Shown here in pieces: positions 2,259-63,922 of a stretch of DNA of 64,000 nt. The stretch's first letter is position 1, and every line of letters starts with the position of its first letter. The position numbers and the translations under genes were made by a program. The DNA is taken from contig JAKMXF010000088.1 of the NCBI GenBank assembly GCA_024704765.1, positions 434,001 through 498,000 of the forward strand. The letters are read 5' to 3'. Source of the stretch: Oopsacas minuta (Eukaryota; Animalia; Porifera). Under the pieces are notes generated by a model, which was not told the origin of the DNA, made no database searches, and was given only the letters and a program-made list of their open reading frames with translations.

Positions 2259-2836
2259 CCCCCTTACCTTACCTTACCTTACCCTACCCCCCTTCAGGTG
2301 TATATTTTTTATCATTTCTATTCACTTATTTGTACCTTATTAATTCTCACTTATAACTGTTTGTTAGGATAATTATTTATAAATTATACTGTGTTTATAT
2401 TTGTAGTTTTCTAATTGAATATTGTTTGTTTGTATTGTTATTTTTGGGTAAGATATGATGCATTAGTAAACAAAACGTGGCTAAAATGCGTGAATATTAT
2501 CAATTTAACTTGATGGTCACTTTTTTTTTATAATATTGCCCGATAATTGTCACATTATGAAGTTATTGGCGTATTAAGTATGTCTTTTCATTGAGAGTAT
2601 TCCACTATTCCAGCGGTTCCCAACCTGCGGTCCATAGGATCTCAAAATGGTATCTTAGCCTAAGGAACCGGTTCATGCTGAATAAGGAAAACTCTACATA
2701 GGACATTCTTATTGTAGGTATCTGATATCATTATGATTTTGGTAGAATATAGAATTACACAATTTCTCCTACAATTGATAGGCTCCTATTGGAGTATAAT
2801 TGTTAAATATCCTGTAGTAATTTGTTAGTTTTTTCA

Positions 2837-5800
2837 ATGGACATTCGACTGTTATCTCTCTTGCTTGTCTCACTGTGTGGATGGATAACATGTACCAATG
2901 TAGATACAACAGAAGCTGTTTGGTTTAGAGGAGATGAAAGGTCTTATTTCGGTTATTCTGTTAATCTTTATCGCTACAGGAATAAACCTTCTATGAGATA
3001 TGTACTCATAGGAGCTCCAAGGGCTAACGGCTCTGTAGATGTATTTCAAACTGGGAATACTTATAGGTTAGTTCATATTATGTACAATCAACTCCGCTTT
3101 TTATCAAACACGCTAATATCGAAGTCTTAAATTATACAAATATGATCAGTATACAACTTGCTAATAGACCTGCTGAGCTGTATTACGAAAAGTTTTGCAA
3201 TTTTCACTTGTTTACGAACTATATATCTAGATGCGAAGCTCTGAACTCCTCCTCTTGTGTTGAGTTGAATCTCCCTGGCGTAGCTGGTCCTAATGCAATA
3301 AGTGATCAGGGAGAAGCTTCTGATGAAATTGAGGATAAGGCTAACATGTGGATGGGAGGGACTGTTACTAGTAATTATTATACTGGTACTGTTGTTACAT
3401 CCGGTCACAGGTATTGTTTCTGTTGTTATATCATATGGTATTGGATCAAAATATAATGGAAACCTTTATTAGCAACTTGTAATTCCAAAATCCGCCAATC
3501 TTAGCAACTTTTACATAGAAATTGCATAGTCTTTTGTATAGAAATGAGTGCATAGTACTAGCTAATTCACATATTAGCGAGGAAAATTCTTGAGAAATAC
3601 GATTTGCTAATAGGCGGCTTCCACTGTACCCAGAAAATCATGTAGGTATATGATCTCACGCATACATGCGACAAACAAATAAACAAACAAACAAACAAAT
3701 AAACGAACACACAAACTTGAAGAATACACTAGAAATAGTGTTACATAAACACTTGCTTAACAGACTGTATAATTTATGTAAATTTATCCTTTAGATACTT
3801 CTCGATGGATGGAGATGGTAGTGCTAGACACGATCCAATTGGTTTAACCTACATCTTATCAGACCCAGAGAGTGAAGGGGTACAATTACGTTCGTGTGAT
3901 GGAAGCTCCTGTAGTACACGCCGATCTTTCTATGGTATCTGTATGTCTGGATTCTCTACCTTGATTCTAAACGACGGATCACAATTGTACGTATCTGCTA
4001 CAGGGTATAATTATTTTAGGGGTACCCTATTCCGAGGGTTTGAGGATACGAATTGTGGTGATGGGATATTTAGAGAAGAGGTTGATTTCTTCGGATACAT
4101 GGGTTATGCACTTACCTCTGGTAGGATTCTGAATAGTGATGAAGATACTATTGTTTCATCAGGACCAAGGTTAGTTGTTTTTGCCAGATCCTCAAACCGC
4201 CACTGCCCATTATATAACAAGATGTGGCCCCGGGCTATGCAAAATCCTGGGACCGCCCCTGCGTTTAAATCTCAGTGAATTCATGTAGTATCTGAAATCT
4301 AATTTCTGTCATAGATATATTGAAAATGAACAAATAGACAAATGAACTACAGTAAAACCGGATATACTTAATATACCTACCTACCTTAACAAACTAAAAT
4401 GAGTAGAGAAACTTGTTTATAATTTCTATTTCCTTATTATTAGACAAAACAGTCATCTTGGTAACATATTCCTAATCAGTAATGACACAAGTGCGAATCT
4501 TAACACTGTCCTATCACTACACGGTACTACACAGGACTCATACTACGGATTTTCTATGCTAGCAATAGACCTGAATAGAGATGGTATGGATGAATTACTG
4601 GTGTCTGCTCCTATGTTTAGTCTACCTGGAACACCTGAGATAGGACAAGTACTGGTTTATCCAAATATTGGAGTGAGTGATACGTAGTTTCCTGTTGTAG
4701 GGAGTACAGTGTAACTTCCAAAAACGAGGTGCTAGGGGCCGAAAAATGTTACCCTGTTTCTGCCAGATTCCCCATTTGCGTAGATTCATTTATATGGGAC
4801 TAGGAATTCATTTTTTACTCCGTTTCCATAGGCCCAGTTATGGGATTCAATGTATTATTTATGACGTAAGAATCTGGTTGATTTGACAGCAAAATAATGT
4901 GATTCGTATATTAGTATTTGAAGGAAATTCGCTATTTGTCAATATCGTCACTCAAAAAATATTCGAGAAAACGGGGCGTCCCAACTTAAATAGGACAGTA
5001 CATACACATCGAATACTTATATGGTATGCGTTGTTTTGCATTTACCAAATTCTCTATTTAGTCCGGGCTCGGGCCTGCAACAACTGTGATCCAGGACATC
5101 CAGCAAATACCTTACTCACGTTTCGGCACTGCTATAGCTGATCTGGGAGATCTGAACAATGACGGTTATCCAGAGATTGCTATCTCTGCTCCCTACGGAA
5201 ATCAAGCTGGTTCTGTATTCATATACTCAGGGACTCCTCAAGGAATTCTCTCTTCTCAGCCTATTCAGACTATCACTGGAGAAGAAGTAGGTCTGGAGAG
5301 AGGAGCTGCATTCGGCGCATCTGTGTCAGGGAAGCGGGACATAGATGATAACGGATATAACGATATTCTAATCGGGGCATATGTTAATAGCTCTGCTTTC
5401 TTGCTCAGGTTTGCATCCTTACCAACCATTTCTGACTATTTCCCTTGATATTTATTTTGAAATTTCCGGTTTTTCAAAACTTCAAATTTTATAAGCAAAT
5501 AATTGAATTTTTCACAATTTTGTCAGATAACTACGAGAAATATCCAATATTTTCCTTAGATTTAGTAATTTTCCCCTAACTATAATGGATAATATATATG
5601 TACGTACAGTCAATTTCGTTATATCGAAGCTCAAGGGACTGTGATAAATACTTTGATAAAACCGATGGAATTTATATTACTTTGGCGGTTTGGGACCATA
5701 TTTGTACAATTTTACACTTCTATATAAGCTATTATTTCGCTATATCCGTGTTAGATATAACTGTAGTTGGTTGTATAATGTATATATTCCAACTGTAAAA

Positions 5801-9603: not shown

Positions 9604-9668
9604 TACTTATATTCGGATCTTATTTGTGTTATCATTTATACATTTAATCTGTAAGCAAACATTTGTGA

Positions 9669-10826
9669 ATGACAACAGGAGTTGTAAATCAAGATCAGCA
9701 TTCATTTGATATTTTGCACGCAGTTATAAGCTCAACACTTCAAAAGTTTTACAGCAATACAATTAACTGGGAATACGATGATATATTGTTGGATATTTAT
9801 CGAGAATTTGAAGATAATATAGATAATATTCCAGAATCAATATTCAAGCTACATGGAGGATTAAATACCGAGAAATTCACAGTTTTTCGCGATTTTGCTC
9901 GCCTTGGCCTTATTCTTTATCAGTCAAGTTTCCTCGATTTCTCTTACAATTATGACAAGGATTGGGGTTCGAAATTCGCATCGATCCCTTCAGAAATATA
10001 TTTATTAACAACAATTTCCTTTCATTTATCTAAACTCAGTCAAACAATTCAAAGTTTAGATTATTTCCAAATGATTATCTCGCAACTAAAGTTTGAGATG
10101 TTACTAGTAGCATTTTTGTTAAAACATCCTAGTTCAATTAATATGGCATTTTTGGCTTATAGAGATGAGAATTGTAGTGAGACAGATCAAATATTTAGAC
10201 TCCAAATCCAGGAAATCCTATCAATCAAGCAGGGTGAATTACACCTACATCTTCGCAAGATGTTACGATATTTTAAAAGTAAACGTGTACTCTTACTCTC
10301 ACGATTAATCAATGATTTTCGGGCACTAAATGAGAAGATACTATATGAAGCAATACAAACGTTTTTTTCTCTTGAAACTAATTCATGGACTTTGTCACAT
10401 AAATTCTATGATTTTTGTGTAAATGCTGCGATCGATCCGTTATCAAATGAAGACATGAGTACACACCCAAAAGTGGTAATCGATAGCCTCAATGGATTTT
10501 TGAATAATAACAGTGAGGGGGACTTCGATAGAGAGACTTTAATTAATAATTTTCCATTTTCTAAAGTGCCCTGCTCTGATATTCCAATAGAAGAAGCGAA
10601 TAGAGTTATTTCTAAATATGTAGGACTTGATGAATTGAGTGAATCTTTTTCTCCAGAAGATGATCAGGGTAACTCGTTCAGAGGATTAATCGATTTCTTG
10701 ATTTCGCTCATTGAAAGTTCGGATGATGTTATCTCATTTTTGAGGTTAATGTGTGCTAGAATGCATCCTGCTATTGATTTCTTAGACTACCTTAACCAAT
10801 CTACTGCGTTCCCAAAATGTACTTAA
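9669..10826 (+). CDS. Intronless hypothetical protein, 385 aa, no recognised family
   Basis: A 1158-nt ORF in AT-rich DNA where such lengths are unlikely by chance. ATG start, globular helical-looking composition, candidate acceptor AG at 9654-9655. Confidence 0.7.
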   Translation: MTTGVVNQDQHSFDILHAVISSTLQKFYSNTINWEYDDILLDIYREFEDNIDNIPESIFKLHGGLNTEKFTVFRDFARLGLILYQSSFLDFSYNYDKDWGSKFASIPSEIYLLTTISFHLSKLSQTIQSLDYFQMIISQLKFEMLLVAFLLKHPSSINMAFLAYRDENCSETDQIFRLQIQEILSIKQGELHLHLRKMLRYFKSKRVLLLSRLINDFRALNEKILYEAIQTFFSLETNSWTLSHKFYDFCVNAAIDPLSNEDMSTHPKVVIDSLNGFLNNNSEGDFDRETLINNFPFSKVPCSDIPIEEANRVISKYVGLDELSESFSPEDDQGNSFRGLIDFLISLIESSDDVISFLRLMCARMHPAIDFLDYLNQSTAFPKCT

Positions 10827-11100
10827 ATACATAGAACTAAATATCATTTTTTTGCATTTTCTACTCTATTTTCCAACTGTTCTGGGTTTCCTGGATTATC
10901 CTCGGATATACGTCTTATCTAAGGAAAAACTATTGGATATTTTCGGGTGGAATCGGAGGAAAAGCGTGAATTGCCCTGATTTTTCAAGGAAAATCCCGGG
11001 AAATTTGTATAAGAGGTTGGTAAGTATGCTCTACGTATAAGTATCCTATTCCCATTGACTAAACAATTAAAAGTTCCCTCTCAAATTCTATACAATTAGC

Positions 11101-11123
11101 TATCATTTCTCCCCTGCATTAAG
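11101..11123 (+). promoter_or_regulatory. Candidate (trans-)splice acceptor abutting the TMEM97 ATG
   Basis: tatcatttctcccctgcattAAG|ATG. Confidence 0.55.
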
Positions 11124-11594
11124 ATGCTAGCTCGCTACATAGATTGGGTGTGTATCGTATTCCTTATAATCGCGACTATAATGGCTATAGTCATAGATTT
11201 ACAACCTCTATACCCTGAATCTACTCCTGTTATTAAACACATCCATAAAGCATTCTGTGATGATTACCAAAGCACTCTACTATGCTATGACACACCAGTT
11301 TGGCTACATACCATGACGTATATACAGCTTGTGTTCGTAATCCCTACGTATTTACTTGGGATATATGGAATGATATGTCAGAGAAATTGGGTTAAAGATT
11401 ACATGCTAATGCTCGGCTTCTATTTACTCACAACATCTATTGTGTATATTGTAGAGACCTATTATAATGACAAATCTCCGAAGAAGACATTATTAATTTA
11501 CTCAACTATCCCATTTGTTGTTATCCCTGGTCTTATGGTATTGAGGTTCTTAGCAATTGAATTGCCATACTCTAGCAAAACGAAGACTGAATGA
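11124..11594 (+). CDS. TMEM97: TMEM97/sigma-2 receptor-like EXPERA-domain membrane protein, intronless, 156 aa
   Basis: Four hydrophobic segments. IDLQPLYP ~ MDLQAVLP, TPVWL ~ PPAWF, QLVFVIP ~ ELVFQLP and NWVK..TT ~ KWIR..TT against remembered human TMEM97. C-terminal KxKxx ER-retrieval signal (KTKTE). Confidence 0.8.
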   Translation: MLARYIDWVCIVFLIIATIMAIVIDLQPLYPESTPVIKHIHKAFCDDYQSTLLCYDTPVWLHTMTYIQLVFVIPTYLLGIYGMICQRNWVKDYMLMLGFYLLTTSIVYIVETYYNDKSPKKTLLIYSTIPFVVIPGLMVLRFLAIELPYSSKTKTE

Positions 11595-12024
11595 TACACT
11601 GTATGGCGTATGTATGGTTATATTACGATAAATTCTTACTACACTAGACTCTTATTAAAATTATACAAAATCTATACGCATAACATTATGTGTGTATCTG
11701 TATCGACACAAAAACAAAAAATTGTTACACTTTTTGCTCGACCAGATTTACTAATATGTAATTAATACATATTTATTCATTACATGCATAGTTCTATTAA
11801 AGGAAATCTTATTAATATCGCCTTATGCGAATAGTATTATAATGGGAATTTTATTCGTAAGCAACATATTACAATTCTCCCATGATTTACGCCATTAATG
11901 GGTTTATTCATTTTCGTAGCAACATATTCTGTTGTAAAGTTTATATGTAGAAACATATGCGCTACGAATAAAGAAAGACTCTTATTAATATTTATATAGA
12001 AAATGTAATGAGTATTTGTACGTA

Positions 12025-12115
12025 CAGTAAACTTCCGTTTTAACGAAGTGATTCTTTACCCTCAATAGCTTAAAAGTAATTGATTTAATTCCGCTTATGA
12101 CGAAGTGATTTGTAT
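12025..12115. mobile_element. MITE family D fragment (other copies ~14988-15067 and ~62506-62640)
   Basis: TA|CAGTAAAC start; shared gaagtgattcttt..ccctc.atagctt.aaa.taattgat..tccgctta core at all three loci. Confidence 0.7.
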
Positions 12116-12701
12116 GTATGATTGCGTAGCATAATAGTAATTTGATTTCTCTGTCACAGATTTATTAGTGATATTTTTAATAGAGTTGATTCTGTAAAAA
12201 CGCAGCAAAATGGCTACCTAGTTTGTGTGATAAAATAGGAATGAACATGTTTGTATAGGCTAAGTAAGCTATAAAAGTCTTGACATCGTAAAGATTGAAA
12301 TAGTCCGCTTCAATGATAAATAGAGTGGGTTTCGCTTATAAAGACACCTGTTCTTTTCTTGTTAACTTCACAGTTAAATTTCAATTTAGAGTGAGACTCG
12401 ATTGAAATCTGTGAGACTAGACCAATTTCAAAGTAGACCTTTGAAAAGTAAACCTTTTTATTTCAGTATGATATTCAGAATAGGATCTACGTGATCACAT
12501 TTTATCTTATCCCATGATTGTATTGTATATTCATTGATTAGCCACAGAAGTATCTCTAATTACTATTTCCCATATCTACTCAATTCTTGGTTCTTATACT
12601 CTCATTCTATTTTGTGTTTTATATAAATTCATATATTTTGTTGCAATTTCAATAATTTTGACTAGTTTTATGCTTTGAAGTAAGAATTTTGACTTTTATC
12701 G

Positions 12702-15700
12702 ATGGAACTTGATACAGCAAGAGTAGCAGATTATTTTGTTATTTGTGGTTTGAATACGAACAGTCGTCCAGTCCCTAATCTCTGTGAAATACAGGAAGTT
12801 CATTCGGTGTCTTCGTTAGAATATGTGACACACATAACTGCAGTTAGATTTGATGAGAAGATCCCAGCGGAATATGTAGTGAGGAAGAATACACCAGCTG
12901 GACATAGGGTTGATTTTAGGATGTCAGAATTTACTACTAATTATTTTCATTTGTGTTATAAGAAGAGTAGAGATTTGGATGGGCCTGTTAGTCCTATTTC
13001 TGAGATTAGGTGAGTTGCTGCTATTTGTTGTAGAATTGTACGAACTCTCTATTTACAGTCAACTCCCGGTATATCGAAGATAATTACTTCGATGTACCGA
13101 TGAAATATAGGATACTTTGGTTTGGGACCAAATGTGTACATATTTCAGGCTTCGATATTTCCGTGTTCGACATAACGGAAGTTGGCTCTAGAGTCTTTTG
13201 ATCCTAAAAAGGAATATCGTTCGGTCATTAGTAAAGTAACGCAAAATTCAACACAGCTTTCCAATCTTTATTTCACGTTTTGTCATATATTGTAACTATC
13301 CACCCTCCCTAGACCATTCTTTAACCGTCTAACGGCCACATTATAATTAACATCTCAATAATAGACCTGAAAACTCAATTATTTTCCGTTTCTAAATTTG
13401 TTTGTTTATTTTAAGATTGTTTATTTTCATTTTTAGAGTATTTTTAACAGACACAAACCTACCCAGAGATTTCCAATTAGTAGAATGGCACTCATCTCAG
13501 AAACCTGTTAACTTTGGTTCATTAGGAAGAGAGATCTATCTTGGTTATAGAACTACAATATTACATGCACATACTGTAGCTATCACAGATTTAAATCTTA
13601 TTTGTGTTGATAAAGTGAGTTTTCCATTTCCTGTTACGTATTTGAAATTTTGCTAGGATTTGTGTCAGGTTCATCGACGTTCCTGATTTTGTGAACAATA
13701 TAATCTACTGTTATTTGAAAGCTTGTTTCAGCACACCACACATCCAATTTTGCTTATTTCATCGTTCTATCACTATAAACTGTATTATCTAGCTTAAATA
13801 ACCATGGATATATATATATATATATATTATACTATCTACGGTAGAACGCAGATAAGACATACACTCGGGTCGATGGGGTATCGTGAATCTATAATTTTTG
13901 AAATTATCCAGGTTGAGGGCATTCCTGTTATCTTACAAGTAATATTCCGTTTAAATAATTATAAATTCGTATAAAGCAATCATGTTTGTAGGTGTAAACA
14001 CATTCGTAGCCTACATTTACGATATATCAACGTATTTGCGTGTCTCTTAGCAACATAAAGTTATGTCTTAATCAAACCTGAATTTAATTACTATATGAAT
14101 AGTACAATATTTCATTCGATAATACTCTAGCTAAACTGTCTTGAAGTTGGTCAAAACACATGAATTTTGTATTAGGATTATTTTACTGTATTCTAATTCA
14201 GTGAGAATTTATTTATACAATTTCTATCTTGGATATCAGCTGGTATTTTAAATATCCGTGTTTGAGATAACGGGAGTTGAATGTATATTTATCCTATATT
14301 TCTGAAATTCTCTTTTCTTAGGGAGAAGTCCCCCCTCCGGGATTCAAACGATTGAAAAAGAACCTTGACAATCATATAATGGTAAGCACACTCAACATAT
14401 GTGAATATTATGTCTTAATGATATTTTAATTATAGGCAAAATCAAAAATACATTTATGCTATAAACTTGCTATGCCCAGACCCAAAGCTGTTTACTACAC
14501 TCCAGGTATGAGTAGTCTATTATTATTCTTTTGATAAATGTTTGTTTGTGTCTAAAAATATGGAATTGCTAACCATATGCATTTGTGTAAATTATCATTT
14601 TCAGTAGCTATTATTTGGATGTCAGCGTTTTGGTTTTCTACGATCGATTTGCTAAGAATATTCAATACAAAGTTTGACTATTCATAATTTGATCGTACAT
14701 TTATGCACTAGATCTTCGTCTACAGATTCACCCTTATTCTAGCAATAGTTGAGGATTATTTGTGTATATTTCTTCCGTAATTAAGTGTCATGATTGAGTT
14801 GTTTCGAGTATATTTTAGCGAACTTAGACACTTCTATAACGGTGTACTTTTTAATATATTATTTGGGTTTATCTTCAATTAATTTTATTAATGATTTCTA
14901 ATCAGCAACCTTGATAAGCAAAAGTAATGGTTATTCCATACGAATTCCTATATACCAAGTTAGCTGCCGTAATGTGAGATCAATATTAAACTCTCGTTAT
15001 ACAGAAGTGATTCTTTGCCCTCTATAGCTTGAAAGTAATTGATTTTCTCCGCTTATAACGAGAATTTCCTATCGATTGCTACCATGAAAATCACATATTC
15101 TTCGAATCTTCTATTCTATAACTAAGATATTCGAACCTTATACTTCTATTTCACTGTTAATTTACTATTTTCAGTATTCACAGCTGATCTATTCCTTAGA
15201 CAATATAGTTAACATGTCCAGTTTTATCATATACTACATGTGAATTTTATCATATACGTATATCGATTGAAGAATTTGAAATATTTATTTGGTAATTAAT
15301 ACGCAAGTGGATTTATTAATACGATCTGAATTACGTTTTCAAGATATTGCCACTCCAGTAATAATCTTACTTTTTCACTGTACGTAGCGATAAGTATTGT
15401 AAATTTATTTATTACTTATTTTGTAATATACTGGCTAGAAATGCGATTTCCATATTTTTCTGTATTTCTGTTATTTCGTTCTATGATATTTATACACCTC
15501 AAAATGCACTTAACAAATATTCTATGACCTATAGGGGACCACCAAGGGGCCCATGGACCTCAGTATCGGGACCGCTGCGATTCCAAAGCTTTTTGAAAAC
15601 CCCCTGAATATTTGTGGAACGAAAAGCCTGTACCCGTTTGTATCTGAATTTTTCGCAATTATTATTATGAAAAACGGTAACCTTTTAAAATCTTACATAC

Positions 15701-18700
15701 GTAATACCCAGCTTTATACCTATTATCTGACAATTCTAATCAGATTGCGTACGATTTACAATATATTGAAAGATATAGACCCTTTGAATTAGCACTTTAT
15801 TATAATGACAGAGCTAGAAGATCATACGATAATAGAACTGGTACCCGAATCTATTGCAGAACGTATTTGGGGCCTAAGTGAAATGTTCCCAGAGCGTGTA
15901 CAAACTGTTACTGGAAGTTTTACAACCAACACTGTGAAGGGAATTATATTTTCTTGGAAATTTATACGTAGTTCTCTCTGGGTTTTGAGTACGAGTTTGG
16001 CAATTGGTGTCCTACCATTGGTTGTAGTTCAACAGAGAATAGCGTTTGAAGATATGATGAATGAGCAGAGGAAACAAGGATTATTCGGCCCTGCTGTACC
16101 CGGTGACCCCAGCAGTCAACATGAACCGATGCGCACTTGAGACATTTATACGTATATGTCTTACTTATTAGTTAGAAAACATCGAATTATTAAACTATTT
16201 TAATGATCATATTGTCATACGTGTAATTTCGACTCGATTACTTAATTCATCTTAGAAATTGCATTTTGAAAATATTTGTCCTCTGGCAATATCAGATATT
16301 TACTTATTGTACAACACATGTAAGAATATTTTACTATTCACTGCTGCATTACTTTAACAGCAATGCTAAATCAGAATATAACTCGAGTAGTTATTTCTTG
16401 CTAAAAATACTATTACGTCACTCAATACCACCTCATGAAGATTATTATGCTTCCAACCCATTTCTCAGAGCTGAAAGTACAGTATTTTCTTACAATATTA
16501 TCATTCTTTTACTATTTATTAACTCAAAATACTGAACTAAGCATTCCTCTATAAATACCATTCACTTTCAACAGCTGTATATTTACTAATTACGTATATA
16601 CCTTTTATTCCGTTCTAACTTTCTCCAATATTCTTTAGAAATTCTGAGTTATTACCCAACAAAAGAATACCCAAAAGATCCGTTAGACCGGAACATATTG
16701 AGTTTCTGTATGCCAGCTGGTGTCAGTATAGAAGTATATGATGAAGATACTCTATGTCCATTACCTACTTCTGCTAATTTTGTGTTTACAAGAGATGATG
16801 GAGTTAAAGTTAGTTGCTGATTTATTGATATAATTAAATTACAAATTATCTAGTCTGAAGCCTGCGTCAAGGCTTCCGGAGGTGTTTTGCTTCTTGGTCT
16901 CAAGCTTAGTTGACTAATTCTCATTGAAAAAACGGCTAATCATGTATTGCAGTGTTCCCCTGAATAACCACCGGGGGATAGAAAAGGCAACAAGACTTGT
17001 GGATGAAATTAATTATCACATTCCCATATAAGTAACTGTTTGAGGACGAAACCTAGGTTGCTAATACTCAAACTCTACTGTAATATATTTCCTGTAGAGT
17101 TATGGCGTAGCTGTTACATTATATGAACCTGTACCAGAGGATCTTAGAAAAATAGATATGTTCAAATCACTTAATGTAGAAGCTAGTAAGAAGGTAAGTC
17201 CCGCCTAGAATGTGGGTATTTATTGTGGATACAGTATAATCTTCACAAACGGGCCTTGTAGAAACGAGAAACTTCTTGAAACTGATCGTTTTGGGGGGGG
17301 GTATAACACTGTATGAAAATTCAGAGAATTTTGAAAATGTGTTTGTATTTTAGCCAAACTTATTTATGAGTAAAGCAGTAGTTATAACATCTAAATGGCC
17401 TTTCTTTCCTGCATTCAGAACGTTCTTAACAACTCTATACAGAATATCTATCTCTAAATCTGTAATACCTCTTGAAAGGTATTTATCTTGTCTGTGTATT
17501 TGTGTGTTCTATTTTAAGACAATATTCCGTTTAGATATATTTATAATTTCATGAGAGGAATACCATTTCCTAAGCCAGATGGCTCTAAAGTTATGATGCA
17601 GGTAAGTATTTGGTTGTCTTTTTCGCGTATCTGTTTGATTCCAATTGATGATATGCCTTTATTGCAGTTCAAACTTCACAATGTTCTTTGAACATAGCAA
17701 TACTTATGCTAACCAATTTTATATTTCAATATTTTCCTATGGATAAGAAGTGAAATTCATGGAGATTAGAGATCTCGCAAGTATGTATCTCATCAATTTT
17801 ATCTAATATATTATATTATAGATAGGACCTGAAAGTATATTCTTCTCACCACCAGTCAACACATTAATGCCTCTTAAGTGAGTCATCTCAATAATTTCCT
17901 ATTTATCTTTCTATTCCCAAAGTACCATATGTTATCTATTTGTATTATTATTATTTAGCACAGCTCCATTTCACACTCTCCTACAGTGTCTCAATCCTAA
18001 GAATATAATTACACTCATACACTTGGTTTTATTAGAGCAGAAGATAGTGTTATTATCTTCTGTACAATCTACACTTATATCTGTAGCAGAGTCAGTACAA
18101 TGTGTGAGTATATACGTATACAGTGTTTATAGCATATTAGCGATTCGACTAATAGCAAAATCGCCATTAGCAACTTTTTGACGTGGCTTAGGACACCTTA
18201 TTGGCTCTTTTAGATGTGTCTTAAGGGTCAATTTCTAACTAATACGATACTACTGATAAGACTTATAGATTATAACTTTCCCTTGGTGTATTAACTACAG
18301 TGTAAACCTTAACAAACGGAGTGACAGGAACGCCGAAAAATGCTACCCAGTTTGTGGAGGTTCATTTGTATGGGACTATGAATACGCTTAGTTTGTTTTC
18401 ACTCCGTTTTCAGAAGTTCCCCGATGTAGAGGTTACACTGTACTCATAATTCTTATTTCATTCTAATAGTTACTCTACCCTTTTGAATGGCAAACTCCTT
18501 ACATTCCTTACATCCTGGATACCATGACAGATATGTTAGATGCTCCTGTCCCTTTTATATTCGGTTAGTTTCCAGCTGACTCTACTACTGAATTGTGTGA
18601 TATGTTTAGTTAGCTGTATTTAATATTTGATTATTGCAGGTATTCATTCTTTGGATTTTGACGTTGTTCCTTATTTGGAGAATCCTACTAGTGAAGTTAG

Positions 18701-27036: not shown

Positions 27037-27256
27037 GACCATTAACAATAGGCGGCCTTTTCCTATTTTACTATGTCTTTCGACCTGTTACACATATTTA
27101 TATATCAACCATTTGTTGTACAAAATATAATTCTATTTGCTGTGCACATTTAAATCGTACTTGTATTGTAAAATGAATAAATTTTGTGTTTGGATGTATA
27201 ATTAGAATTCTGGAGTGAATCGTTAATTTTCTCTCATAGATAATATTTCGGATTGA

Positions 27257-27403: not shown

Positions 27404-27689
27404 TATATGATAGGGACAGCAGTATTGCTGATTTAGAATTACACCATTTTTGACCTGGCTACCGAAATATATGTGTATTAACCGGAGCTATTAGCATGGT
27501 TTTGTTTCTGGACAAGTGACCCGTATTTAGAATGTTGACGCTTTGTGTGTTGTGTTTTTCTCCAAATATTCAAAAGATCACACTCTGAACTACATTTTTG
27601 CAATTTTTAGCATACTAATAGACAATATTTTTTATATGAATAATTGTGACCCAAAATACACTCCAACATTGTCTTAGAAATTAATTCAA

Positions 27690-27708
27690 GAATTGATTCT
27701 TCAATTAG
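27690..27708 (+). promoter_or_regulatory. Candidate (trans-)splice acceptor of VIPAS39
   Basis: ttgattcttcaatTAG|aaATG. Confidence 0.55.
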
Positions 27709-29105: not shown

Positions 29106-29369
29106 ATAGTTTTATATCCTGCTTGTATTTTAATATATTCAATTGCATGCTATCATTGTATAAAGTTGATTATCTACTTACCAAACTCTTTACAATTTTC
29201 CGGAGTTTCACATTATTTCCCTATTAAACACAAAATATCCAGAAATATTGTAAAAAGTAGAATAATATTCTCAGATTTTCAAGTGATATCTCGGGTTAAG
29301 TGTATTTGTTTGTGTTAGTTTATTGTTATTTTTGGCATAATAGAATTAGGAAATTCAACCCGATCACTG

Positions 29370-47300: not shown

Positions 47301-47338
47301 TCAGAGTTTTACCCTGTGACAGACATTTCATAAACTAA
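29370..47338 (+). CDS. RADIL/afadin-family Rap1 effector, RA-RA-FHA-DIL-PDZ, ~1466 aa, 18 exons
   Basis: Exons: 29370-29504, 29704-29875, 34648-34804, 36722-37466, 38221-38598, 39897-40076, 40228-40728, 40858-40901, 42031-42253, 42595-42775, 43299-43597, 43672-43882, 44036-44299, 44755-45002, 45936-46250, 46695-46889, 46951-47024, 47260-47338. Total 4401 nt with all phases consistent. RA1 VRFFLD..EKYSP, RA2 ending RRFELKK, FHA GDLIQLGDNFLFMYRNP, DIL EQWAIRTGL and LSPPQLHHILLHY, PDZ PGIYIKSI..LTIGSKILSIN. Confidence 0.85.
29537..29640. mobile_element. MITE family B fragment
   Basis: TA|CAGTGTAACCTCCACAAA start, aaacggagtgaa. Confidence 0.8.
29928..30103. mobile_element. MITE family A, degenerate
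   Basis: Left TIR and core; right end eroded. Confidence 0.78.
31587..31747. mobile_element. MITE family E, single copy
   Basis: TA|cagtattacctctctgtagtgaac ... gttcactagtggaggtttcactg with an internally repeated gttca motif. Confidence 0.7.
33743..34020. mobile_element. MITE family A-derived composite with unrelated internal sequence
   Basis: Family A termini at both ends enclose ~130 bp not seen in other copies. Confidence 0.75.
35014..35927. mobile_element. 914-bp non-autonomous Tc1-like foldback element with ~340-bp terminal inverted repeats
   Basis: TA|CAGTCAGGGGACAAAAGTATTCGACCAC at one end and its reverse complement |TA at the other. Arms 35014-~35354 and ~35586-35927 differ by about 2 substitutions and 1 indel. 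No transposase ORF. Confidence 0.9.
36146..36297. mobile_element. MITE family C, copy 1 (152 bp)
   Basis: Perfect 29-bp TIR CAGTCGACTCCGGTTAATCGGACCATTTT, TA flanks. Confidence 0.92.
36496..36624. mobile_element. MITE family A, internally deleted
   Basis: Both TIRs, TA flanks. Confidence 0.85.
38646..38816. mobile_element. MITE family A
   Basis: Full length, TA flanks. Confidence 0.87.
39655..39829. mobile_element. MITE family A, reverse orientation, degenerate
   Basis: gaccatatttgtactattt core and one terminus. Confidence 0.78.
42293..42542. mobile_element. MITE family A-derived element with longer internal region
   Basis: Both family A termini with TA flanks; partial core. Confidence 0.7.
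43045..43226. mobile_element. MITE family B, long form
   Basis: Both TIRs and core. Confidence 0.83.
43906..44013. mobile_element. MITE family A fragment
   Basis: TA|CAGTCAACTCCCGTTA start and gggaccatattt core. Confidence 0.78.
44325..44654. mobile_element. Family G MITE
   Basis: TAA|GGCCCCTGTT start and TAA at the far end; colinear with 26540-26823 plus an internal insertion. Confidence 0.75.
45166..45325. mobile_element. MITE family A
   Basis: Both TIRs and core. Confidence 0.85.
46353..46467. mobile_element. MITE family B
   Basis: Both TIRs, TA flanks. Confidence 0.85.
47057..47226. mobile_element. MITE family A
   Basis: Full length, TA flanks. Confidence 0.88.
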
Positions 47339-48577: not shown

Positions 48578-48591
48578 TGCCATGAATAACC

Positions 48592-48616
48592 TATATCTTT
48601 ATTTGATATTATTTAG
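48592..48616 (+). promoter_or_regulatory. Candidate (trans-)splice acceptor of membrane paralog 1
   Basis: tatatctttatttgatattattTAG|cATG. Confidence 0.6.
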
Positions 48617-48617: not shown

Positions 48618-49073
48618 ATGCAACCTTGGTGGGTGATCATATTCACCATTTGGTATGTGGTATCTCTGATCTATGTAGGGAAGAGATGTTGGTCTGGGGG
48701 CTTGTTAATAGGTGTTGCTACATGCTGGGGAATAATCGGGGGGACATGGGAACATGTCAAGGCTTATTACTCTGAGTTGGACGCCAGACCTGTGGAAGAC
48801 CGATGGATGCTTGTGGTTTTTGATGGTCCAATAGTACTCGCTTCCTCTTATATGCTCATCAAATTTCTCTTCAATACTCCAGCTTCTAATTTGCTGAAGA
48901 TATTTTTCTTATTTTTAGGTGCGGTATTATTTGCAAGCTTCATAATAACAACTGAAGCTAAACAGGATCTGTATTGGCATATACAACATTCAATGATACA
49001 CTTTGTTACTGCACTACAGTTTGGCGTAATTGCCTATTACTTGGACAGAGACAAGGCTAAGAAAATTAATTAG
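48618..49073 (+). CDS. Small multi-pass membrane protein, paralog 1 (~151 aa; His motif YWHxxHxxxH)
   Basis: Intronless ORF with ~5 hydrophobic segments. The ATG at 48618 aligns with the paralog starts and follows a strong acceptor; an upstream in-frame ATG lies at 48582. C-terminal KKIN dilysine. Confidence 0.75.
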   Translation: MQPWWVIIFTIWYVVSLIYVGKRCWSGGLLIGVATCWGIIGGTWEHVKAYYSELDARPVEDRWMLVVFDGPIVLASSYMLIKFLFNTPASNLLKIFFLFLGAVLFASFIITTEAKQDLYWHIQHSMIHFVTALQFGVIAYYLDRDKAKKIN

Positions 49074-49721
49074 ACTTTTAAGAGATTCTGATTTAATTCT
49101 TGTAATTACTGTAATTGGATTTGGTTGATAAATGTAGATTTATGTCGGGTAGCTGTCATAATTATTTATCAAATTGAATTATAGTCGAACGGATTAATGG
49201 GATATCGGTTAATTGAGTCACTTGTAGAGGAATAGAACTACAGTCAAACCTGCTTAAGGGCACCTGCACATAGCGGCCAGTGGCCACAATTTCTTGTCCC
49301 TTACTGGCGCTAAACTGTCTATAACGGTTCTTTTATCTAACGTCATGTTGTCGGCAAAGATTGCAAATTAGACTTTTTGCAATAGCTATTAATTCCGAAT
49401 TATTCAAACTTCCCAGAATGTTTTCATATCAATCCGTCAGTCAAGAATTCCTTCAATTTCCAATAATGATAATCTATTGAGATTATAATGGCATCTTGAT
49501 GGTTTAATATCAGTGAGACATTCTTATTTGAGATAGCCAAAGACACATCGGTTTTGTCTCACAGATATTAAATACTAAATAGCACCAAATTAACCATTTA
49601 ACAATTCTAATGAATTTTGTCTGTGAATCAATTTCTAAATAAGACAGTATGTTATTTAATCTGGACAATAGTCACAAAGATTTCCTTAAATATCTAAAGT
49701 TCATAAACAACTTTTTGCAAA

Positions 49722-50192
49722 ATGATAGAACAAACGATAGAACCGTGGCTACACGTATTTTCCATCTGGTATGCAATCAGTACCGCGTATACTTTACGGA
49801 AACTTGTTTATGGAGGCGTCCTCGTTGCTGTACTAGGCACATGGGGGTTTTTATCTGATATATGGACACACCTTTCTGTATATATTTATTGGGATCCGGC
49901 TGGTACAGAAATTCCCCTTCCTAAAGTTATATTTTTAGCCCCATTTGCTTTCGCTTTCCTACATCTATATTACCAGCTATGTGCTAATACGTATGCGACG
50001 AATTTAACAAAGATTCTCTTGGCTTTATTCTTCATTGTCGGTAATGTAACATTCACTCCAGCTGATGATTCACTGAAGGATATATACTGGCATTATAATC
50101 ATAGTGTACTTCATGTGATATCTGCAGTTACTGTTGGGGTTGTTGCTCAGCATTTGGATGAACTACGGATGATAAAGGAAAAGATAAACTGA
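49722..50192 (+). CDS. Small multi-pass membrane protein, paralog 2 (156 aa)
   Basis: Aligns end to end with paralogs 1 and 3 (PW, FSIWY, WxH, NLTK, DIYWHYNHSVLH); C-terminal KEKIN. Confidence 0.8.
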   Translation: MIEQTIEPWLHVFSIWYAISTAYTLRKLVYGGVLVAVLGTWGFLSDIWTHLSVYIYWDPAGTEIPLPKVIFLAPFAFAFLHLYYQLCANTYATNLTKILLALFFIVGNVTFTPADDSLKDIYWHYNHSVLHVISAVTVGVVAQHLDELRMIKEKIN

Positions 50193-50709: not shown

Positions 50710-51150
50710 TCAATGTATTCCCTTCAAATACTCATCAAATACTCCTACAGTAACTACAGTAATCAGATGGAGTACAGCGTGTCTAGAATGCCAGTATATA
50801 TCCTTTATTGAGTCCTTAGAAGATGGAGTAAATACTGTATTAGCAACAATGAAGAGTAATACCATTAGAACTTTTGTTAAATTCGTCGCATAACTATCCA
50901 TACAGAGCTGATAAAACATGTAGGAGAAGGCGATTATAAACGGGACTAAAAATAAAATTCTAGAGAGGGGAAGTCCACGGCCATCAGGGTCCCAATATAC
51001 GTAAACTGAAGCATGTAGCCAAATATCTGGTATAAATGACCAAGTCCCAAGCACCGCAACAATCCTATCTCTGGAGCATAGTTTCCTTACGGTATACAAA
51101 TTAGTGACTGTATACCAGATTGAAAATATATGTAGCCAAGGTTCTATCAT
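50710..51150 (-). CDS. Small multi-pass membrane protein, paralog 3 (146 aa), inverted
   Basis: Closest to paralog 2 in protein and DNA (atgatagaaccttggctacat). Keeps DIYWHSRHAVLH. The only minus-strand gene found. Confidence 0.78.
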   Translation of the reverse strand: MIEPWLHIFSIWYTVTNLYTVRKLCSRDRIVAVLGTWSFIPDIWLHASVYVYWDPDGRGLPLSRILFLVPFIIAFSYMFYQLCMDSYATNLTKVLMVLLFIVANTVFTPSSKDSIKDIYWHSRHAVLHLITVVTVGVFDEYLKGIH

Positions 51151-51336: not shown

Positions 51337-51364
51337 GTATTTGTATTTCGTTTCCCTTTATTAG
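51337..51364 (+). promoter_or_regulatory. Candidate (trans-)splice acceptor of HGD
   Basis: gtatttgtatttcgtttccctttatTAG|caATG. Confidence 0.62.
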
Positions 51365-51366: not shown

Positions 51367-53671
51367 ATGACTAATCATATAATTGGAGGAACTGCTAAGC
51401 TTTCCTCTTCGGATTTATGGTCTGCTCTTTGCTATCATCCTGGGTTTGGGAGCGATCTCTCTTCCGAGGCTCTCCCCTCCTCTCTCCCTGTTGGACAGAA
51501 TAGTCCCCAGATATGTCCTTATGGATTATACCCCGAGCAGTTGAATGGGGCTGCGTTCACATGCCCCAGAGAGACGAATAAAAGGAGTTGGCTCTATCGT
51601 ATCCGTCCGAGTGCAGTGCATGAGCCTTTCTCTATCTTGAAGGAAGGCACGAGCCAAGACCTGTCAGATAATTGGGACGAAATAGCCCCCAATCCCAATC
51701 AGATTAGATGGAACCCATATCCTCTACCGGATGATAAAGTTAAAATCGACTTCATACAGGTAATCCTGGGCCAGGGATTAGTTTTGACTCTTGGAATTTA
51801 TGGATGTAAACTGGAAATTATTGTAAGAGATTGTTAAGTATGCCATTGCATTATGTCAAATAATTACTCGTTGTTTCATCAAAAGTTCTCTCAAGAAACA
51901 TTCACACTTCGATTGGAGTATTACCCACATTTTTGCATGTAGGGTCTTCACACATTGGGTGGGGCAGGAGATACCAGATCAAGACATGGAATGGCTATAC
52001 ATATATATGCTTGTAACGCTAGTATGGTAGATAGGTGTATGTATAACAGCGATGGAGACTTCCTTATTGTGCCGCAGTTAGGGGCTCTGAAGATTACAAC
52101 TGAATTCGGTAGAATATTAGTACAGCCGAATGAGATTTGTGTGATACAGCAAGGAATGAGGTGAGATAATTTAGTGTTCATATATTAGCAAAATCCGCCA
52201 ACAGTGTAATAATAGTAAATTTGAAGATTGTCAAGGAGATCGCCCGCCAAATTACGAGACTGTTAGTATATTTAATATTTGAATATTAATAATTATACAT
52301 ATCTTATTTTGTTACGTATGTTCATATTGGATATTTATATTTAGGTTTTCCATTGAGGTTACTGGACAAACTCGTGGTTATATTCTCGAGGTTTACGACA
52401 CTCATTTCCAGCTCCCAAATCTAGGACCAATTGGTGCAAACGGTTTAGCTGCTCCCAGAGATTTCCTTTCTCCAGCTGCTGCTTTTGAAAACAGAGAAGT
52501 TCCTACAGGATATCATATAATCAGTAAATTCCAGGGGAAGCTCTTCGTTGCTAAGCAATTCCACTCACCTTTTGATGTAGTAGCTTGGCATGGAAATTAT
52601 ACTCCATACAAATATGACTTGAATAGGTTTATGGTTATTAACTCAGTAGCGTTTGATCATGCTGACCCTTCTATATTCACAGTATTGACTTGTCCTTCTC
52701 TAAGACCAGGAGTTGCAATAGCTGACTTTGTTATTTTCCCTCCAAGGTAAACGAATACAGGATAAGTCAACTCCCGTTAAATCGAACACGGGATAGCTCG
52801 AAATACCCGCCTATATTGAAGTCTGAGATTGTACAAATATGTACTCAAACCGTCAAAGTAACATAAAGTTTATCGGTTATAGAAGTATTATCGCAGTCCC
52901 TTGAGCTTCGATATAATGGGAGTTGATTGTATATCGTAATTATATGGAAATTCTATAATCAGATGGATGGTACAAGAGCATACATTCCGTCCTCCTTACT
53001 ATCATCGTAACTGTATGTCAGAGTTCATGGGACTAATCAAGGGTAAGTATGATGCTAAAGAGGAGGGGTTCTCTCCAGGAGGAGGTAGTCTACACTCTAT
53101 GATGACTCCACATGGTGCTGATGCTACTGCTTATGATAATGCTGTTAGTAGGCCCTGTAAACCTGTCAAGTAAGTACAAAAATATATAAATAGGAGTACA
53201 GTGTAACCTCCACTAACCAAGGACGCCGAAAAATACTACCAATTCCCAGTTTGTGGAGGTTTCACTGATCCCCTATTCGCTTATTAGGTATTTAACCATG
53301 GATGTTGGATTGAATTTGTCTGCTCAGATGTTGTTCTAGGTCATTTTGAGGCACTATTCGCTTGATTGGAGGGGATTTGGGTATAACACAAAATGAATTA
53401 ATCCTCCATCCATGGTACATATCTAATAGACCATTTTTGTCAGAATATTTTTCTACATTTCCCTAAATAACTTAATTATAGGCTTGAAGACACTATGGCA
53501 TTCATGTTTGAGTCATCACTTAGCCTAGCACTAACTAAATGGGGAGATGATAACAGTCTTAAGTCTATGGATTATTGGAAATGTTGGCAACCTCTAAAAT
53601 CCAATTTCAATCCTGACTGGAAGCCTTCAGTACTACAGGACAGAGAGATTTCAAGTTCTCTACTCACATAA
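51367..53671 (+). CDS. HGD: Homogentisate 1,2-dioxygenase, ~469 aa, 5 exons
   Basis: Exons 51367-51759, 51943-52160, 52345-52746, 52963-53169 and 53482-53671. [38 protein letters not shown], iron ligands in [12 protein letters not shown] and TPHG. Confidence 0.97.
52764..52929. mobile_element. MITE family A
   Basis: Full length; fills most of HGD intron 3. Confidence 0.87.
53199..53267. mobile_element. MITE family B, short derivative
   Basis: cagtgtaacctccac ... gtttgtggaggtttcactg. Confidence 0.8.
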
Positions 53672-54076: not shown

Positions 54077-54110
54077 TTTCCAGGAGTTCCCCGTTTGTGT
54101 AGTTACACTG
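54077..54110. mobile_element. MITE family B terminal fragment upstream of CAPN15
   Basis: gttccccgtttgtgtagttacactg|TA. Confidence 0.65.
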
Positions 54111-54115
54111 TATGA

Positions 54116-54136
54116 TCTAATCTACATAATTCCTAG
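54116..54136 (+). promoter_or_regulatory. Candidate (trans-)splice acceptor of CAPN15
   Basis: tctaatctacataattccTAG|cgaATG. Confidence 0.58.
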
Positions 54137-54139
54137 CGA

Positions 54140-60535: not shown

Positions 60536-60966
60536 TATACTTGTAGTTTTTATCGCAAGCAGGTAATCTAATTATAGCGTTTGTATAATTTTTGATATCT
60601 CTACTAGTCGTCTCAGTCTTTGCGTGATTCCACTAAACATTGAATTTGAATTCTTATTGTTTGTATGTTTGTTTTTACATTTACTATTGTGCTTTTTTAG
60701 TATTCACAAATTATTTTTGCTCTTGAACTTTCTCTGATTATTTTATTGATGGAATTGCTCCTTTTCTTGTCCACAATTCGTTGAGTTTATTGGAGGTGAT
60801 CACTACAGTTTATTCGTGTAATTGTTAACCAATTTTTATCATAAATATGTCGCGTTTACTACAGCTGGTTATCAGCTGGTTATGACTATAATTAGCCACG
60901 AAATATATACTGTTTTAATCGCTAGATTAATATTTTCAAGTTACAACAATCCTGTTTATTCGTTTA

Positions 60967-61048
60967 CAGTGGAACCTCGTTAATACGAACTCCGGAAAAG
61001 CGAAAAATTTGACCTTCCGTTGGTGTTTGTATTAACGCGGTTCCTCTG
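60967..61048. mobile_element. MITE family F, 82 bp, 30 nt before the TBCC ATG
   Basis: TA|CAGTGGAACCTCGTTAATAC ... GTATTAACGCGGTTCCTCTG|TA. Confidence 0.8.
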
Positions 61049-61050
61049 TA

Positions 61051-61078
61051 TTTTGTTGTTGTTGATTAGTTAAGTCAG
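61051..61078 (+). promoter_or_regulatory. Candidate (trans-)splice acceptor of TBCC
   Basis: ttttgttgttgttgattagttaagtCAG|ATG. Confidence 0.58.
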
Positions 61079-63922
61079 ATGGCCTCTATTGAACCTATTG
61101 CCCTCTTGAGTGAGGAGGAGAAGATAAAGAAGCAGAAAGCTTATGAAGAAGGAGTAGCTAAACGCTACGAGGAGAGAATATCCAAAAAGCAACAGAGAAA
61201 ATCTAATATTGAGCACAAACCTGAGGAAACAGTTGACTACTTCTGGAAAGAGTTTAATTCTCAGAATTCTGATATTAATTCTATGTTTGAGCAATTATCA
61301 GAAGCTCTAGAGCCTAACACTATTGCTAAAGTAAGTTAGTATTGTATATTGAAGATGAGGAATTACATTTTCGTATGAATAAACGATCCAGGACCCGGAT
61401 AAGAAACGGTGCGACCGGTGTTAATTGTCAAGGGAACATGTCCCCTGCTCACTCTAGCGACGACCATTTGCTTGTTTCAATGACCATTGACTCTGGAATT
61501 TTCTAGTTTTGTATATTTTCGAATTGGCTTGTGGCTGATAAAATTCAATTAAACATTATTCGTTTGCATATTGTCTCTGTTATGATTACTCGAGTATTTC
61601 TCTGTAATTTGCTAGAAGAACTTTCATTATTTGTGGCTAATTCTTGAATTATATATTTGGCAAAACGGTGAATTATGTAATCTAGTGGATTATTCGTTCG
61701 GTTCATTCATAGACTACGAAATCCATATTAGTTAATTGTAGCAAAATGATAAGAATTACAGGTTTACTGATTAATATATTTAGTTGGAACTCTTATGATT
61801 CAGTTATTTTAACCTAAAATATGTTGTCATGTATATTTCATTTGTTTAAGGGGGCGAACTCTGTTGATACGTACAACTTTCAAGTTCCAACAAAATAAGT
61901 TCCCATTCATTATCATACGATCTCTATTCATATTAACCAGTTTAAAAGATAAAAGACCGTGACGCTAAGACGATCAATTTCTAGTTTCCTTATACGTACT
62001 CCCTTTTCTATGAATCATTTCTGTTAATACAAAACTCCCTATATGATGCACAAAATTGTAAGCGTTGATTACAGACATTTATGGGTGAATGGAAATACAG
62101 TCGACTCCGGTTAATCGGACCACTGGTTAATCGGACAATTCGGTTAATCGGACCATTTTCTCCTGGACGGAATCTAATCTAATCCAGGATTAATATTTAA
62201 CATTTTTCGGTTAATCAGACACTCCGGATAATCGGACCACTTTACTCTGGACAAAAGTGGTCCGATTAACCGGAGTCGACTGTATTTCCTAATTAGCATC
62301 TGCTGACATTTGAAATTTGTTGCGGGAAGCTTTTGATGCGTTGCAATTTATTGGTAGATTAATATGATTTCTCACAGGTTTTCCTAACTGCAATTAGACA
62401 ATCATTGCGCCAGTCAGTAAATTTACATATTGCCAATTTTGTCATTTAGCAAAACAATCAAGGAGTAATTGGAATCTGGATATGGGTGTAGCCAGTGGAA
62501 GTGGTTCTCCCGTTATAACAAAGTAATTCTTTCCCCTCTATAGCTTGAAAATAATTGATCTCACTCCGCTTACAAAGAAATACCGCTCCTAACGAAATGT
62601 AACCGGCATGCTGAGCACTTCGTCATAACCAGAGTTTACTTTAAATATTCACATTTTTCCCATGTTTTGGACATAGTACAAGTTATTGGCACCTGCAGTT
62701 ATACATGAATGAAGAATCACTTTAGTTTATACTTCTAATTGTATACTGAATTTTGAATATTGAACTTAGCATTGTGCCTTATTGCAGAATTGGATTCAGT
62801 TTTGGTTTATTGAATTTATATTATTGTTGACGGAAAATAACATCAGTGTAATTATTTAAGGATTCGAAAGACAGGTTTCAGTGGAAGAAGAGTCCGAATC
62901 TTAGAAGTTATCTATTGTATAATCTACATTTCAAATATCCTTATTCGAAACTACATTTACTAATCGTATGTCACACCACGAGCTATTTAATATGTTGTCT
63001 CATTTATTTCAAAATTAAGACAGTGAAACCTCGGCGTTCCTATTTTTCCGTTTGTGGATGTTACACTGTAGAAGGTCAGTTTGTATTTTTTACGAACTGG
63101 AAATTTTATTTGAGATATTTCATATTTTCTAAGCTTGAATTCCTTCAAATTTCCTTATGTTTTTAGGAGATTGATGTTAAACTGGAAATTATGCAAAAGT
63201 ACATGAATGACTCTATACTCTTCCTGAATCCGTTTGACTTAAGAATAGCACAATCTACTATAAAGAAATTACAAGCTGATTTAACTAAGGAACGAGAAAA
63301 ATACGCGCCGCGGAAAAAATTCGGTTTCAAATCCAGACAGAAACAGACACAAAATGGAGGACAAGTCCCCAAGAAGGAGCCTTCTGTGGTTGCTAAAATC
63401 TCTCCTGCGCCATTACCAGCAAGCAAAAACTCGTTTGTATTGAAAGACCGTAAAAATGAGAATATTATAATCACCCCAGAAGAAGTTTTCAACAAAGATT
63501 TGTTAATTCTAAATTTAGACAATTGTACACTTTACATACACAGCATCCCCGCTACAGTCCATATGACTAATATTACTAATTCTCAGATATCATTCGGGCC
63601 CGTTAAAACCTCAATCATGATACACGACTGTGTTAATACAAAGTTTTCCCTCGCTTGTCAGCAGCTACGTATACATACATCAGTAAAATGTGATTTCTAT
63701 ATACACGTAACGAGCCGAGCAATCATTGAAGATAGTTCAGGATTACGTTTTGCCCCTTTCACTAATACATATCCGAATTTACAAGATGATTATATGATAT
63801 CTGGGTTAGATGAGAAATTGAATAACTGGGCTATCGTGAATGATTTCAATTGGTTATCGAACAATGAAGCGTCGCCAAATTGGCGTATAATTCAAGAAGA
63901 TCAAAGGATGGCTTGGAAATAG
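61079..63922 (+). CDS. TBCC: Tubulin-specific chaperone C, 335 aa, 2 exons (61079-61330, 63167-63922)
   Basis: MQKYMNDSILFLNPFDLR, PRKKFGFKS, GPVKTSIMI and ACQQLRIH with the arginine finger; C-terminal NNWAIVNDFNWL. Confidence 0.95.
62098..62282. mobile_element. MITE family C, copy 2 (185 bp)
   Basis: Nearly identical to 36146-36297 plus 33 bp carrying two extra GGTTAATCGGAC motifs; TA flanks. Confidence 0.92.

Follow-up and report, generated by a model that had tools for sequence, protein, structure and literature searches.

Conserved 3′ splice acceptors beside start codons in the glass sponge Oopsacas minuta suggest spliced-leader trans-splicing of about half of the genes in a one-way array

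In Caenorhabditis elegans, monocistronic genes are trans-spliced to the leader SL1, with removal of the outron. Spliced-leader (SL) trans-splicing is also known from glass sponges: hexactinellids are among the listed SL lineages (PMC7986045, through which we cite Douris et al. 2010 for SL trans-splicing in hexactinellid sponges), and the leader that Aphrocallistes vastus adds by trans-splicing is about 37 nt long (PMC10282587). The hexactinellid literature that we found gives no leader sequence, and the genome paper of Oopsacas minuta nowhere mentions trans-splicing. Where SL trans-splicing resolves operons, the spacers between genes measure about 100 nt in C. elegans, at most 84 nt in Ciona and at most 60 nt in Oikopleura, and their median in the operons of Trichuris muris is 517 nt (PMC7986045). 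Here we analyze a 64,000-nt stretch of the O. minuta genome (assembly GCA_024704765.1, contig JAKMXF010000088.1, positions 434,001 to 498,000; hereafter, the window), which carries a dense chain of genes pointing almost entirely one way. An initial annotation, made from the sequence alone, had proposed that these genes are SL trans-spliced and that some of them form operons; its statement that SL trans-splicing has been reported in hexactinellid sponges agrees with the two publications cited.

We found that 3′ splice acceptors exist beside start codons of the window, that they have been kept by selection across six hexactinellid genomes, and that they come without donors. A pyrimidine tract and a YAG acceptor are present before the first AUG of six to seven of 13 genes, and the acceptor features of the remaining six do not differ from chance. 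The sites concerned are listed below.

11099..11123, + strand, TMEM97 site: C/T-rich tract and AG abutting the ATG at 11124
15768..15792, + strand, TOM22 site: AATTAG, 12 nt before the ATG at 15805
27684..27708, + strand, VIPAS39 site: TTAG, 2 nt before the ATG at 27711
48592..48616, + strand, paralog 1 site: T-rich tract and TTAG, 1 nt before the annotated ATG at 48618
51340..51364, + strand, HGD site: strong T/C tract and TTAG, 2 nt before the ATG at 51367
54112..54136, + strand, CAPN15 site: CTAG, 3 nt before the ATG at 54140
61054..61078, + strand, TBCC site: T-rich tract and CAG abutting the ATG at 61079

Three of these AGs have ATGs just 5′ of them: in frame at paralog 1 (position 48582) and HGD, and in frame or nearby at CAPN15. 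The TOM22 acceptor stands farther from its start codon, and the (A/T)ATTAG sequence is kept in all four species compared, with spacings to the ATG of 12, 2, 8 and 3 nt.

The distance (d) from the nearest upstream AG to the ATG was 0, 0, 1, 2, 2, 3, 8, 12, 13, 17, 20 and 22 nt at the gene starts. As a null, we used all 1,089 + strand ATGs in the window, 26% of which have an AG within 4 nt (median d, 11 nt); AG accounts for 5.4% of the window's dinucleotides. Only the six sites at 0-3 nt (TMEM97, TBCC, paralog 1, VIPAS39, HGD and CAPN15) are closer than chance. The gene positions, gaps, AG coordinates and AG-to-ATG distances given in the initial annotation all reproduce, and the AGs end at 11123, 15792, 27708, 48616, 51364, 54136 and 61078 as it had them. 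Its observation that start codons follow acceptor-like AGs exceeds chance, as regards distance, for the six sites at 0-3 nt, but not for those at 8-22 nt. The observation is real, yet only about half of it exceeds chance.

Comparison with other glass sponges carries the result. Searches for orthologues with VIPAS39, TOM22 and HGD exon 1 gave matches that were 58-81% identical in long ENA assemblies and Logan contigs. Thirteen loci were taken from six other hexactinellid assemblies (Vazella pourtalesii and five designated spB to spF), and orthologous start codons from five other hexactinellid assemblies formed the test set. The regions upstream of the orthologous ATGs cannot be aligned past a few bases; the ATG-adjacent AG is nevertheless kept. 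A d of 4 nt or less was seen at 19 of the 32 orthologous starts outside O. minuta, compared with 29% under the null (p = 3.5e-4). When only the six genes that have d ≤ 4 in O. minuta were counted, 14 of 17 orthologues fell in that range as well (p = 8e-6), and the result held when spC, the closest relative of Vazella, was left out (p = 7e-5). Because the orthologues of the five genes with larger d were at chance (5 of 15 with d ≤ 4, p = 0.45), the close AG is a gene-specific trait. The distances across species were as follows, in nucleotides.

HGD: 2, 3, 2, 2
CAPN15: 3, 2, 3, 3
VIPAS39: 2, 2, 4, 2, 3
TBCC: 0, 0, 4
TMEM97: 0 (O. minuta), 2 (Vazella), 14 (spB), 2 (spC)

The orthologues of paralog 1 gave d values of 18 and 6. 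When the last 6 nt before the ATG were examined, AG was the most enriched of the 16 dinucleotides (25 of 44 starts versus 12.5 expected, p = 7e-5), and TA and TT ranked next, which fits TTAG; the most enriched hexamers in the 150 nt upstream of the ATG were TTAGCA and ATTAGC. The close sites also have the character of acceptors, with a pyrimidine at −3 in 21 of 25 (51% in the background, p = 6e-4) and a T fraction between −17 and −3 of 0.47 versus 0.32 (p = 8e-8). The register of the AG varies over 0-4 nt (0, 2, 3, 4), which argues against a fixed context for translation initiation.

If the close AGs were ordinary acceptors, donors should lie upstream of them. Strong donor-like GTs in 31 orthologous gaps numbered 11, compared with 12.9 predicted from the rate on the antisense strand. 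Among the gaps upstream of conserved acceptors, 6 of 19 contained any strong donor, whereas at least 75% would be expected to do so with cis donors (p = 8e-5). A scan of the whole gap uncovered no strong donor-like GT upstream of CAPN15 (0 of 4 species) or TBCC (0 of 3), and the HGD gap has one in 1 of 3 species, at its far edge. The initial annotation had raised the case of a donor-like CAG|GTAAT joined to TBCC; that site (60560-60567) falls short of the donor threshold, and the relatives lack an equivalent. The acceptors thus look unpaired, that is, without a cis donor partner, as a statistical result.

Conserved, unpaired YAG acceptors by the first AUG are the footprint expected of SL trans-splicing, and we infer that the exon joined at these AGs is a spliced leader. 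Judged from genomic DNA, the proposal is well supported for TMEM97, VIPAS39, paralog 1, HGD, CAPN15 and TBCC and plausible for TOM22; we consider it likely that the six genes are SL trans-spliced, probably together with TOM22. The initial annotation had extended the proposal to the genes of the window at large: it is upheld for about half of them by conservation, by the YAG and T-tract character of the sites and by the gaps devoid of donors, and not for the rest, which are at chance. According to this model, a functional acceptor made up of a T-rich tract and YAG would lie 0-3 nt before the ATG of at least six genes, and probably one 12 nt before that of TOM22. A short outron, transcribed from the region upstream of each gene, would be removed, and the glass-sponge spliced leader would be joined at the AG. 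Only the leader and 0-3 nt would remain as the mature 5′ untranslated region (UTR), with the annotated ATG as the first AUG. The acceptors would be present whatever lies upstream, like SL1 on monocistronic genes of nematodes, and would not be marks of operons.

The closest counterpart is the SL trans-splicing described for the same animal class, and the signature is common to six hexactinellid genomes, including that of V. pourtalesii. Addition of a leader calls for just such an acceptor, unpaired and 5′ of the ATG. That literature saw leaders on RNA, without genome-wide placement of acceptors and without O. minuta, whereas our analysis concerns the genomic side only. The resemblance to SL1 trans-splicing in C. 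elegans lies in an acceptor near the AUG, without a cis donor, on genes that have a promoter to themselves (in the window HGD, with its divergent neighbor); the difference lies in an independent origin and another leader.

SL trans-splicing was already known for glass sponges. The conserved acceptors abutting ATGs suggest that it is routine, and selected, for about half of the genes in the window. What the window adds is a conservation test across species, a test for missing donors and a short list of junctions at which operons can be tested. The finding matters for the annotation of start codons, 5′UTRs and unannotated nested genes such as TOM22, and it bears on the number of times that SL trans-splicing has originated among animals. 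The potentially new part is the operon question, since glass-sponge operons, if true, would be the first in Porifera.

A number of observations weigh against SL trans-splicing of the window's genes. The comparison of AG-to-ATG distances with a control, which the initial annotation had called for on a genome-wide scale, is not significant with the window starts alone (d ≤ 4 at 6 of 13 versus 26%; binomial p = 0.096, Mann-Whitney p = 0.07) and exceeds chance among the orthologues. The AGs at 8-22 nt, those of integrin 2, the orphan gene, DENND4, TOM22, RADIL and paralog 2, lie at chance distances. Scored with an acceptor matrix, the candidate AGs rank above random non-coding AGs but below real acceptors (mean percentile about 70), with percentiles above 90 only for paralog 1 (95), HGD (93) and CAPN15 (99). 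This position weight matrix and its donor counterpart were trained on 31 introns with consensus-like donors, out of 58 inferred from conserved exons by tblastn of open reading frames (ORFs); the inferred HGD introns agree with the annotated protein KAI6658517.1, and introns inferred from tblastx segments were dropped as spurious and long. Kinship among the species, above all that of Vazella and spC, means that the conservation tests are not fully independent. In the only long-read study, made in A. vastus, no more than 4% of the reads carried the leader (PMC10282587). Exact and cluster look-ups of single-exon proteins and the homology searches with VIPAS39, TOM22 and HGD exon 1 returned genomic contigs only, and among the matches no contig or protein fragment derived from RNA, with or without a leader, for TMEM97, the orphan gene, the paralogs, VIPAS39, TOM22 or HGD; a pattern scan of metagenomes for the start of TOM22 came back empty. 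Rfam, a collection that contains no hexactinellid SL model, gave no match of any kind in the window, and so no SL RNA gene, whether the gathering score or E ≤ 1 was applied. Finally, TMEM97 of O. minuta has a perfect donor, TTG|GTAAGTA (11020-11026), 104 nt upstream of its acceptor.

The remaining five starts, which may or may not be trans-spliced, have the following nearest AGs.

2804..2828, + strand, integrin 2: 8 nt before the ATG at 2837; distance within chance, uncertain
9631..9655, + strand, orphan gene: 13 nt before the ATG at 9669; chance distance, uncertain
12660..12684, + strand, DENND4 (TTTGAAGTAAG): 17 nt before the ATG at 12702; possibly just 5′UTR
29325..29369, + strand, RADIL-like gene: ATTAG ending at 29349, then the block CAACCCGATCACTG (29356-29369) up to the ATG at 29370
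49675..49699, + strand, paralog 2: 22 nt before the ATG at 49722; no support

No orthologous start of integrin 2 was recovered in the loci of the relatives. The orphan gene has AG followed by C at 12-15 nt in four species, and DENND4 has a conserved T-rich stretch with GAAG at 15-22 nt. For paralog 2, d across species was 22, 40, 4 and 25, as by chance. The AG-to-ATG distance of RADIL was 20, 18, 11 and 21 nt across four species. Four species share the 14 nt that lead up to the RADIL-like ATG, CAACCCGATCACTG, and one of them has a 3-nt insertion; this block could be an element of the 5′UTR, or it could be coding, with a start farther upstream than annotated.

The genes of the window, which has a G+C content of 30-40% and in whose 64,000 nt no tRNA genes were found, are arranged as follows.

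ends at 2258, + strand, integrin 1 (ORFs and Pfam)
ATG at 2837, ends at 9102, + strand, integrin 2, integrin alpha (end from the NCBI annotation)
9669-10826, + strand, orphan gene, 385 aa (NCBI annotation)
11124-11594, + strand, TMEM97/EXPERA, 156 aa (NCBI annotation)
12702-27036, + strand, DENND4, 1,778-aa DENN protein (NCBI annotation)
15805-16140, + strand, TOM22, 111 aa (intact ORF, unannotated, in DENND4 intron 14506-16638)
27711-29105, + strand, VIPAS39 (NCBI annotation)
29370-47338, + strand, RADIL-like DIL/PDZ protein, 1,466 aa (NCBI annotation)
48618-49073, + strand, membrane paralog 1, 151 aa (NCBI annotation)
49722-50192, + strand, membrane paralog 2, 156 aa (NCBI annotation)
50710-51150, − strand, membrane paralog 3, 146 aa (intact ORF, unannotated, divergent from HGD)
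51367-53671, + strand, HGD, KAI6658517.1 (NCBI annotation)
from 54140, + strand, CAPN15, calpain-15 (NCBI annotation)
61079-63922, + strand, TBCC (ORFs and Pfam)

The coding starts in the NCBI annotation coincide with the ATGs of the initial annotation for the orphan gene, TMEM97, DENND4, VIPAS39, the RADIL-like gene, paralogs 1 and 2, HGD and CAPN15. TOM22 and paralog 3 are found neither in the O. minuta annotation nor in its protein collection. The TOM22 orthologues have a Pfam Tom22 match, and the paralog 3 ORF is 38-46% identical to paralog-2-type ORFs of other species. The nesting of TOM22 on the same strand within a DENND4 intron is also seen in Vazella, spB and spC. The + strand carries all 12 annotated genes (p = 0.0005, uncorrected), and the count of 13 out of 14 given earlier for the set that includes unannotated ORFs was confirmed (p = 0.0018, before correction for the selection of this window from over 1,000). 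The stop-to-ATG gaps in the window are 578, 566, 297, 1107, 674, 264, 1279, 648, 468 and 543 nt, thus ranging from 264 to 1,279 nt; in the relatives they range from 49 to 1,429 nt, and most measure 233-1,429 nt.

One possible hypothesis for such an array is that HGD-CAPN15-TBCC, DENND4-VIPAS39-RADIL or orphan-TMEM97 is a single pre-mRNA, made from one promoter and cut by SL trans-splicing and by formation of the upstream 3′ end. We regard this as unlikely, although several observations speak for it. Besides the uniform orientation of the annotated genes, the same order of genes recurs in as many as five other hexactinellid assemblies. The order paralogs-HGD-CAPN15-TBCC is conserved in the relatives, and the linkages HGD-CAPN15-TBCC and integrin-orphan-TMEM97-DENND4[TOM22]-VIPAS39 recur in three to four species, where selection may or may not be what maintains them. 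Conserved acceptors precede VIPAS39, CAPN15, TBCC and TMEM97, the downstream members of the chains. In two independent Vazella assemblies, the TMEM97 ATG follows the orphan stop after only 49 nt, so that this spacer has no room for a separate promoter, and the gap from paralog 2 to HGD is 140 nt in spB. Several gaps, at 233-300 nt, would leave at most 100 nt after a 3′UTR of the length inferred for DENND4, and the Trichuris median quoted above shows that operon spacers can be long.

The evidence on the other side begins with VIPAS39 and RADIL: in spC an NHL-repeat gene on the minus strand stands between them, in spF an Na/H exchanger gene, yet RADIL keeps ATTAG/CAG and the conserved CCCGATCACT context in both. 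HGD, whose acceptor is among the best, starts only 216 nt from the ATG of the divergent paralog 3 at 51150; an acceptor is therefore no sign of operon-internal status. The same gap varies between species (49-476, 233-639 and 258-622 nt), and this several-fold variation means that gap length is not constrained. AATAAA and ATTAAA motifs occur in the gaps at about the chance rate, and a poly(A) site could be placed only for DENND4, where about 530 nt lie between the conserved signal, part of the following block, and the VIPAS39 acceptor.

27088..27205, + strand, DENND4 3′UTR conserved block: AATAAA at 27176-27181 and a GT-rich tail, from a four-species alignment

This block of about 120 nt is probably a poly(A) site together with a regulatory element. 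Upstream of DENND4, about 110 and 75 nt before the ATG, ATTC(C/T)TGGTT (12583-12592) and a TATA-like sequence (12620-12627) are conserved in four species. These blocks form a candidate core promoter and so suggest that DENND4 has a promoter of its own. Nor were operons reported for sponges in the literature found (for hexactinellids, PMC7986045 lists none, and no newer paper on them was found). The chains named in the initial annotation, HGD-CAPN15-TBCC and DENND4-VIPAS39-RADIL, hence find no support, given the divergent neighbor of HGD, the separation of RADIL, the DENND4 poly(A) signal and the variable gaps. It is doubtful that even one pair in the window is co-transcribed, and VIPAS39-RADIL is unlikely as an operon. 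As with the operons of nematodes and tunicates, unrelated genes are co-oriented, the downstream members have acceptors, and one spacer, that of Vazella, is 49 nt long; unlike them, the gaps here are mostly several hundred nucleotides and variable, one chain is broken by an opposite-strand gene in a relative, no specialized second leader is known, and the arrays are read from genomic DNA only. That glass sponges have true operons, with long one-way arrays such as orphan-TMEM97 and HGD-CAPN15-TBCC transcribed as polycistronic pre-mRNAs that SL trans-splicing resolves, is conceivable but improbable.

Alternatively, each AG might be the acceptor of an ordinary 5′UTR intron, with a short non-coding exon in the gap and a promoter of its own, and without any leader. 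The TMEM97 donor described above, by its GTAAGTA 104 nt before the acceptor, makes a cis-spliced 5′UTR intron possible for that gene in O. minuta. A GTAAGTA is also found 220 nt upstream of TMEM97 in spB, and GAA|GTGAGTT lies 195 nt upstream of the orphan gene. This explanation is very unlikely for the sites as a group, however, because donor-like GTs in the gaps are no commoner than on the antisense strand, fewer gaps than expected contain a donor, CAPN15, TBCC and HGD have few or none across species, and the 49-nt spacer of Vazella is too short for an exon plus an intron. SL trans-splicing accounts for the sites better than the last alternative, that nothing is spliced, with AGs that arise in an AT-rich genome by chance or as initiation context and mRNAs that start upstream and read through them, which fits the non-significant window counts, the chance distances of half of the listed AGs and the intermediate matrix scores, but is the least probable of all in view of the gene-by-gene conservation of the close AG in five other genomes, the YAG and T-tract character of the sites, the prominence of AG alone among the dinucleotides, its shifting register, and the upstream ATGs at paralog 1, HGD and CAPN15 that would burden an unspliced 5′UTR.

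The spacers of the relatives showed some further features. The genes inserted between VIPAS39 and RADIL are the NHL-repeat gene at 11851-13086 of locus L012 (− strand) and the Na/H exchanger gene at 12176-14035 of locus L014 (+ strand); such lineage-specific insertions in two species mean that local synteny is not frozen. The short orphan-TMEM97 spacer of Vazella (locus L002, 6989-7037; the same in L003) holds little beyond a T-rich tract and TAG. Its counterpart in spC is 364 nt long and contains a stretch of about 300 nt of repeated CGGGAC/GTCCCG motifs that is absent from Vazella. An unbiased k-mer test gave no enrichment for an apparent ATTAA-N-GTTCC motif upstream of TMEM97, CAPN15 and TBCC, and the motif was set aside. 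GTCCC(G/A) and its complement form clusters upstream of CAPN15 and TBCC in spB (locus L010, 12893-13006 and 19183-19316) and of TMEM97 in spC (locus L007, 6519-6658), which are absent at the corresponding places of O. minuta. The spB copies often occur as GTCCCAATTAA (10 of 24 copies in the L010 locus), and the clusters may represent a repeat family or a promoter-type motif.

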